A DNA stretch of 64,000 bases from sequence record PQ390715.1; one strand, 5' to 3'. Below, piece after piece: positions 63,650-63,817 of this stretch; position 1 is the first letter of the stretch; every line of letters starts with the position of its first letter. The notes under the pieces were generated by a model. It did no database searches and was not told the origin of the DNA. It saw only the letters and a program-made list of their open reading frames with translations. A program made the translations under genes and the position numbers.

Positions 63650-63817
63650 TTATACATGTGGGACAAACATAATGATGTGTGTTTGGACAACTCTAGTGCC
63701 ATCACTTAAGATTATACCATTATCACAAACATCAATCACAGTACCCGTTACCTTTACACCACCAGTAAGATAAAAATCATATATAACGTTAGCATCTATT
63801 GTAAAAATATCTTTCAT
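63650..63817 (-). CDS. Hfq/Sm-like 55-aa protein (not in ORF track)
   Basis: [30 protein letters not shown] vs Hfq VSIYLVNGIKLQGQI..VILL..MVYKHAISTVVP. Confidence 0.65.

Follow-up and report, generated by a model that had tools for sequence, protein, structure and literature searches.

Does a short open reading frame (ORF) directly behind a phage ribonucleotide reductase gene encode a viral member of the Sm/Hfq family, and would its product act as Hfq does? The question is raised by a 55-residue ORF in a stretch of 64,000 nucleotides from sequence record PQ390715.1, the whole of which is referred to here as the window. A first-pass annotation, made from the sequence alone, had described this ORF as an unannotated Hfq/Sm-like protein without a C-terminal tail, and had proposed for it either the role of an RNA chaperone for the phage's own non-coding RNAs (ncRNAs) or that of a dominant-negative subunit that poisons host Hfq hexamers. 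Hfq is the central hub of small-RNA (sRNA) regulation in the hosts of these phages. Our analysis makes it very probable that the ORF is a real gene, that its product has an Sm/Hfq-like fold and that it is not a canonical Hfq. The ORF is located as follows:

63650..63817, minus strand: predicted Sm-like ORF, ATG to TAA, 55 amino acids (aa; the coordinates include the stop), identical to PBECO4 gp470, member of PHROG 17251

A conserved gene of RaK2-like jumbo phages

The ORF was found where it had first been placed, on the minus strand and running from ATG to TAA, and the lack of a C-terminal tail was likewise borne out, since the protein ends two residues past its last predicted strand. The flanking 2 kb are 99-100% identical to Escherichia phages SHEFM2K, PBECO4, 121Q and others; the three named phages belong to Asteriusvirus and are RaK2-like jumbo phages with genomes of ~350 kb. 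In PBECO4 the identical protein is gp470 (YP_009150784.1), which RefSeq labels 'membrane protein'. The earlier description of the ORF as unannotated holds for the annotation track of the window and for the records of RaK2, K64-1 (GenBank version), G17, phAPEC6 and slurp01; it does not hold for most other public records, in which the ORF is labelled hypothetical or 'membrane protein'. A search of the window with the family hidden Markov model (HMM) matched only the 55-aa ORF and revealed no paralogue. A relative with 77% identity is filed by NCBI as an Escherichia coli hypothetical protein (locus tag WJW27_002630), which indicates that jumbo-phage contigs are present inside some bacterial assemblies.

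A tblastn search detected the ORF in 71 of 50,697 phage records, at identities down to ~33%, and the records are distributed among phages of Escherichia (34), Klebsiella (10), Salmonella (8), Erwinia (8), Yersinia (4), Serratia (2), Pectobacterium (2), Cronobacter (2) and Xanthomonas (1). Two protein searches added metagenomic relatives, and a profile search of 1.84 billion representative proteins yielded ~25 small clusters of relatives in total and no credible relatives outside the family of the ORF. The long proteins returned by the same profile search are repetitive, Ig-like and adhesin-type sequences that match through composition and repeats, and they were therefore rejected as relatives.

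Gene order is identical in 16 loci (12 named phages and four metagenomic loci) and consists of nrdA, nrdB, the 55-aa ORF, a gene of 76-82 aa, a ~125 aa 'virion structural protein' homologue that is missing in two of the 16 loci, and a MazG-like pyrophosphohydrolase, with DHFR, RNase H and a helicase further along and, in a few relatives, an extra ORF at nrdB. Pairwise ratios of nonsynonymous to synonymous substitution (dN/dS) range from 0.12 to 0.38, which corresponds to purifying selection on the ORF, and in all 13 phages compared its frame alone is open, the other five carrying up to 11 stops. The first-pass annotation had named a lack of conservation, combined with the absence of a detected peptide, as a reason to abandon its proposal; by number of records, constancy of gene order and mode of selection, the ORF is instead a genuine, conserved gene specific to the RaK2-like jumbo-phage clade.

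Predicted fold and likeness to Hfq

An AlphaFold2 single-chain model of the window protein, built on a 42-sequence alignment, reached a predicted local distance difference test (pLDDT) score of 92.4 and a predicted template modelling (pTM) score of 0.74. It is a five-stranded bent β-barrel, with strands at residues 12-17, 22-31, 34-37, 42-44 and 48-53 and a short 3-10 turn preceding strand 5. The model of the orthologue from phage GAP32, which is 68 aa long and 35% identical, has a pLDDT of 86.8 and shows the same five strands, no helix and coil tails. The N-terminal α-helix of Hfq is thus absent from both models, in which residues 1-11 (window protein) and 1-14 (GAP32 orthologue) are coil, and a conserved D-I-F-x-F-D-P segment occupies its place; an N-terminal helix is frequent but inessential to the Sm fold (PMC3710371).

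When the model of the window protein was compared with the Protein Data Bank (PDB) using Foldseek, the top 50 matches were all Hfq, with E-values of 3e-3 to 8e-3, a probability of 1.0 and query TM scores of 0.71-0.80; most had a root-mean-square deviation of 0.9-2.0 Å over 45-48 columns, at 23-33% identity. The matched structures come from E. coli, Salmonella, Pseudomonas, Neisseria, Herbaspirillum, Chromobacterium, Aquifex and Listeria. The GAP32 orthologue gave the same outcome, its top 50 PDB matches being all Hfq (E 1.1e-3 to 3.6e-3), and among predicted viral structures (BFVD) the CBB orthologue was the sole significant match of the window protein. The five-stranded bent barrel is therefore common to the phage models and to bacterial Hfq (for example that of E. 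coli, PDB 1hk9, 3qhs and 4pno); taking both models together, most matches superpose at 0.9-1.4 Å across 47-48 columns, at 25-33% identity. In addition, 59 of 62 family members have a glycine at position 25, halfway along strand 22-31 and opposite Hfq G34 in the alignment; Sm proteins strictly conserve a glycine in the middle of β2 (PMC3710371). From these models we conclude with high confidence that the product is a minimal, helix-less Sm-fold barrel whose nearest structural relatives are bacterial Hfq proteins.

The predicted fold bears directly on the label under which the protein is filed. PHROG 17251, RefSeq and Pharokka all call it a membrane protein; the ORF is a full-length match to PHROG 17251 (E 1e-31), which carries that description, and the label appears to descend, through this PHROG, from the TMHMM-based categories used in the CBB genome paper. 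Against this reading, the Kyte-Doolittle mean over 19 residues peaks at 1.13 in the window protein (family median 1.0), both models are soluble all-β barrels at high confidence with no hydrophobic helix, and the charged residues, six acidic and three basic, are spread along all 55 aa. A full-length member of PHROG 17251 thus has no transmembrane segment, and we rejected the membrane-protein reading as scarcely credible. The present result corrects a label that has spread through all three resources.

At the sequence level, the comparison relied on E. coli Hfq from NC_000913.3, on an Hfq profile of 81 proteobacterial sequences and on a family alignment of 62 sequences. BLASTP aligned residues 16-52 of the window protein with residues 25-62 of E. 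coli Hfq, with 14 identities in 39 columns (E 0.007 as a single comparison). The alignment reproduced the motif matches on which the first-pass annotation had relied, namely Y-L-x-x-G-x-K-x-x-G in Sm1, V, H, I and V in Sm2, and Q-T-H-I-I opposite Hfq 55-59. These Tyr, Lys and His residues are a feature of the window protein and not of the family as a whole, in which the Sm1 Tyr occurs in 12 of 62 sequences, the Sm1 Lys in 18 and the Sm2-type His in 10; what the family shares with Hfq is the mid-β2 glycine and the hydrophobic spacing of the Sm1 and Sm2 parts.

Profile methods gave a weak signal that is nonetheless distinct from chance. The Hfq HMM ranked the ORF first of 721 six-frame segments of the window, weakly (E 0.088). 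Alignment of the family with the Hfq profile by hhalign gave probabilities of 67-77% and P-values of 2e-5 to 5e-5 over 29-30 columns, with the similarity confined to the Sm1 part (window residues 11-39 against Hfq 20-48, probability 77%, P 2e-5). Under another column setting the hhalign score was 29.5, compared with 10.5 ± 2.4 (maximum 18.7) in 100 column shuffles, a distance of ~8 standard deviations, and with 10.3 for the reversed alignment. In a HMMER profile search of PDB sequences, Hfq stood near the top of the list at E 0.4-0.6, which is not significant alone. No Pfam family was matched at E up to 10 by the window protein or by 13 diverse members, the NCBIfam scan of the ORF and its orthologues returned nothing relevant (chance-level matches such as CspH, E 0.048), and no Hfq was present among the matches of the profile search of 1.84 billion proteins. 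A remote common origin with Hfq/Sm, with the shared signal in the Sm1 half, is therefore probable on sequence grounds and is not proven. The Sm/Hfq-like fold that had been proposed is upheld by the two high-confidence models, by the exclusively Hfq structural matches and by this sub-threshold, non-random sequence signal.

The same results bear on a different view, according to which the product is a generic small β-barrel whose likeness to Hfq is convergent and whose role is unrelated, for instance that of an accessory factor for ribonucleotide reductase or deoxynucleoside triphosphates, or of an assembly factor for the neighbouring virion protein. Small β-barrels are very common in phages, BFVD contains many uncharacterised phage proteins of 50-70 aa that match at E about 0.01-0.1, the link to Hfq is not significant at the HMMER level, and the ORF always stands in the block formed by nrdA, nrdB, the ORF, the 77-aa gene, the virion protein and MazG. 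Nevertheless, convergence would have to account for two divergent members whose top 50 PDB matches are exclusively Hfq, and not SH3, Tudor, KOW or other barrels, for a profile-profile score so far above that of shuffled alignments, and for the retention of the Sm glycine, while no conserved cysteine or metal-ligand pattern suggests a redox partner of NrdB. We regard this view as unlikely. A YfaE-like ferredoxin or redox partner of NrdB, considered because of the position after nrdB, was rejected since no cysteine is conserved.

Departure from canonical Hfq and candidate modes of action

The proximal uridine pocket of Hfq is formed by Q8, F42, K56 and H57. Its rim carries an arginine patch, R16, R17 and R19 (PMC3753642, PMC12262471), and its distal face presents Tyr25 and Lys31 (PMC12262471). 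To compare these contact positions with the phage family, we mapped them by the BLASTP and hhalign registers, the register at R16, R17 and R19 being extrapolated from the ungapped hhalign register; faces were assigned according to PMC12262471 and PMC3753642, and proximal residues from established knowledge and from mutant names among the PDB matches. The residues found at each position, counted out of 62 sequences, are:

Hfq R16, rim: F in 52, I in 10
Hfq R17, rim: D in 40, E in 7
Hfq R19, rim: N in 14, E in 13, D in 12
Hfq Y25, distal: V in 20, Y in 12, T in 9
Hfq K31, distal: K in 18, Q in 10, T in 7
Hfq F42, proximal: G in 62
Hfq K47, rim: D in 21, G in 14, T in 12
Hfq Y55, proximal: T in 37, Q in 24
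Hfq K56, proximal: D in 41, A in 8, S in 6
Hfq H57, proximal: K in 41, H in 10

The window protein itself has Y16 and K22 at the distal Tyr25 and Lys31 positions. Q8 has no equivalent because the N-terminal helix, which in Hfq bears both Q8 and the rim, is absent. The family instead conserves a barrel core (F5, F/I7, Y13, L17, I48 and F51), the glycines G20, G25 and G34, P53, a D-N-G sequence in loop L3 (D32, N33, G34) and T/Q45, D46 and K/H47 in loop L5; H or R stands at position 42 in 55 of 62 sequences, and a basic residue (K, H or R) at position 47 in 52. The charge differs as well: over 55 core columns the net charge of the family is -4 (range -6 to -1), compared with +3 (+2 to +3) for residues 1-65 of Hfq in 81 sequences, and the window protein has an isoelectric point of 4.7, the values in the family having a median of 4.5 and reaching 6.0 at most.

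The phage protein therefore departs from Hfq in having neither N-terminal helix nor C-terminal tail, in not conserving the rim arginines, F42, K56 or Y25, in its opposite charge, in being missed by the Pfam and NCBIfam models, and in being encoded by a phage. Judged by its sequence and its models, it is not a canonical Hfq, and, being acidic and without the RNA-contact residues of Hfq, it is probably not a simple phage copy of it. The first of the two roles proposed at the outset finds no support in this comparison if it is understood as that of a general Hfq-type RNA chaperone: such a chaperone requires its proximal pocket, its rim arginines and its distal Tyr and Lys, whose residues the family does not conserve, and in addition the helix is absent and the core is acidic.

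What remains of the Sm type is the barrel, and the reading that we favour, with a probability of about 40%, is that the protein would assemble as Sm proteins do and serve as an acidic adaptor or decoy that makes contacts with proteins, a role distinct from that of a general RNA chaperone. In this mechanism, subunits would join edge to edge (β4 to β5), as in other Sm proteins, and would bind a basic, nucleic-acid-binding partner, possibly through the L3 loop (D-N-G), the L5 loop (T/Q, D, K/H), the N-terminal D-I-F-x-F-D-P cap and the negative surface. Indirect evidence is that mimicry of nucleic acid is common among small acidic phage proteins of the early or middle class, and that LSm domains lacking the helix, that of Edc3 among them, serve to bind proteins. 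The LSm domains of the Edc3 and Scd6/LSm14 types, which act through protein contacts and not through RNA, are Sm barrels without an N-terminal helix, like the phage model, and may be its nearest counterparts in architecture; the Edc3 LSm chains 5lop_C and 6y3z_C were sub-threshold profile matches (E about 0.8-0.9, not significant). A difference is that the Edc3/LSm14-type domains are parts of larger proteins and form no rings, whereas the phage protein stands alone.

Two candidates for the basic partner can be named. One would be a host protein, for example Hfq with its basic core, and the other the phage's own neighbouring product, whose gene is located as follows:

63354..63587, minus strand: 77-aa gene, 3' of the ORF, PHROG 16437

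The N part of the 77-aa protein has a net charge of -6 and its last 28 residues one of +14. Across the 16 loci the N part of the homologues ranges from -3 to -8 and the last 28 residues from +12 to +14, except in phage CMSTMSU, and the basic tail ends in a conserved R-R-x-N-R-K. The gene occurs in the same 71 phage records as the 55-aa ORF, with the same genus counts, and adjoins it at every locus. It has no PHROG-annotated function, and neither NCBIfam nor the PDB provided a match. An acidic barrel beside a protein with a basic tail suggests a pair, on weak evidence.

Several points weigh against the adaptor or decoy reading. The structure is predicted and not solved, AlphaFold2 has seen many Hfq structures, and the Foldseek E-values remain just above 1e-3. 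The position next to the 77-aa gene counts for little, since synteny in the clade extends over the whole block. In all RNA-binding Sm proteins, the L3 and L5 loops form the nucleotide pocket, and the most conserved polar positions of the phage family, together with the largely basic positions 42 and 47, lie in or near these loops, so that a specific RNA or nucleotide ligand is quite possible. Some archaeal Sm proteins are acidic and yet bind RNA. Finally, the conserved D-N-G and P-T-D-K may be kept purely as turn formers.

These considerations lead to the main alternative, a phage-owned Sm ring, a homo-hexamer or homo-heptamer whose L3/L5 pocket, with a residue set of its own, would hold the 3' end of a specific RNA, an oligonucleotide or a nucleotide; it might, for example, regulate phage mRNAs from the nucleotide-metabolism block. 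RNA binding is usual among stand-alone Sm proteins (PMC3710371, PMC4152361), the structural neighbours, all of them Hfq, include several in complex with a nucleotide or RNA, and the top conserved polar residues (D32, N33, G34, T/Q45, D46, K/H47 and H/R42) are located in or near L3 and L5. On the other hand, every member of the family is acidic, with the net charge of -4 given above, the L3 stacking position holds no aromatic residue (G in 62 of 62), the rim arginine patch and the N-terminal helix are lacking, and the window contains no known phage ncRNA except six tRNAs. We consider such a ring possible, if somewhat unlikely.

The second role of the first-pass annotation, that of a poison of host Hfq, would require the phage subunit to co-assemble with Hfq or to cap it through the β4/β5 edges, leaving rings without uridine pockets and rim arginines and shutting down sRNA regulation. 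Hfq is the closest structure, with 36% identity between the window protein and E. coli Hfq over 39 residues; an acidic surface and the loss of RNA-contact residues are what would be expected of a decoy; all hosts of the clade are γ-proteobacteria with near-identical Hfq cores; and the eukaryotic mimics of Sm edges, pICln and Gemin6/7, provide a precedent. However, the profile similarity stops before β4-β5, the subunit interface of Hfq, and the N-terminal helix, which contributes to subunit packing in Hfq, is missing. The family has diverged to about 30% identity while its supposed target is almost invariant, and expression probably depends on terminator read-through (see below) whereas Hfq is abundant. 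Our literature search found no phage-encoded Hfq-like protein, no Hfq mimic and no phage inhibitor of Hfq, and we judge this role very improbable. A wider version, in which a subunit derived from Hfq and no longer able to bind RNA would join or cap the host Hfq ring or another basic RNA- or DNA-binding host protein, is improbable too; if true, it would switch off sRNA-based stress and defence regulation in Enterobacterales and would be the first phage-encoded structural mimic of Hfq.

The nearest biological precedents come from archaeal mobile elements. Thermococcus plasmids encode Hfq-like proteins directly downstream of helicase genes, in the same transcription unit, and the Pyrobaculum spherical virus (PSV) has an Hfq-like variant (PMC3543421). 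As in the phage block, an Sm/Hfq-like barrel there lies 3' of a replication or nucleotide-metabolism gene (PMC3543421), and the PSV protein Q6ZYJ4 is among the weak BFVD fold matches of the phage protein, at rank 47. The archaeal plasmid proteins are fused to a zinc finger, unlike the phage ORF, and we found no sequence relationship between the Sm/Hfq-like proteins of archaeal mobile elements and the phage family. True Hfq genes were detected in only 7 of the 50,697 phage records (tblastn with E. coli Hfq), and several of these seven, contigs of 0.4-0.5 Mb named Salmonella or Staphylococcus, are probably bacterial DNA. A contig from the human gut listed as 'Bacteriophage sp.' (MT835489.1) codes for a protein with 47% identity to Hfq.

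As far as the models allow, the result gives the Sm fold a helix-less, acidic branch among bacterial viruses. It also provides a small, easily produced Hfq-shaped barrel, which is a tool to ask whether phages interfere with Sm-type RNA biology or copy it.

Expression signals and neighbouring genes

How the ORF may be expressed is indicated by the elements around it, listed here together with the remaining genes of the block in the direction of transcription:

63868..64000, minus strand: 3' end of nrdB (ribonucleotide reductase small subunit), running off the window; upstream of the ORF on the same strand, stop TAA at 63870-63868, annotated in identical public records
63834..63858, minus strand: stem-loop with A-run, 11-bp stem, 3-nt loop and T-run, directly 3' of the nrdB stop and 16 nt before the ATG of the ORF
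63826..63828, minus strand: Shine-Dalgarno-like GGG, 9-11 nt 5' of the ATG
63616..63645, minus strand: σ70-like promoter with extended -10 (TTGGAA, 18 nt, TG-n-TATAAT), between the ORF and the 77-aa gene
62948..63352, minus strand: 'virion structural protein' homologue, PHROG 16130
62217..62954, minus strand: MazG-like nucleotide pyrophosphohydrolase, last gene of the block
62185-62213: terminator-like hairpin after the MazG-like gene

The stem-loop behind nrdB looks like an intrinsic terminator or a stabiliser, as read from its sequence. A stem-loop with a T-run stands at the equivalent place in 13 of the 16 related loci with differing stem sequences, so that the structure is conserved and the sequence is not, and the annotations of phages G17 and Munch list it as a terminator. 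A simple terminator scan missed it because its T-run sits inside the stem. The Shine-Dalgarno-like motif has counterparts in most related loci, where GGG, GGA or GGAG precedes the start codon by 9-13 nt, and is annotated as a ribosome-binding site in Munch and fHe-Yen9-04. In the promoter scan, the promoter-like element matched 10 of 12 positions with the TG present, and 14 of the 16 loci retain TGnTATAAT in this spacer, ahead of the 77-aa gene. Since the interval from the stem-loop to the ATG is too short to hold a promoter, and the next promoter lies after the ORF, the ORF is, by inference, the final cistron of the nrdB transcript and would be expressed only through read-through of the stem-loop. 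No transcriptome or proteome data on the ORF were located in the papers on phages CBB and phAPEC6.

The likely true start of the 77-aa gene is at 63587, preceded by a Shine-Dalgarno GGAG, and not at the ATG at 63617; this upstream ATG, which falls within the promoter-like element, is the one used in the mechanical ORF list, so that the gene is there 30 nt too long.

Further along the comparison of loci, the record of Escherichia phage CMSTMSU has nrdB annotated in two pieces and a shortened 77-aa gene, with the Sm-like ORF intact; as the record is flagged UNVERIFIED, these anomalies are probably sequencing errors. Several relatives carry an extra ORF between nrdA and nrdB, which is annotated as an endonuclease in GAP32, others have nrdB called in two pieces with an inserted ORF, and one metagenomic locus has an NrdA with an intein-like match. 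Mobile insertions thus seem frequent in this reductase operon. Elsewhere in the window, a cluster of six tRNA genes lies at 14711-17692 on the minus strand, with Rfam gathering scores reached.

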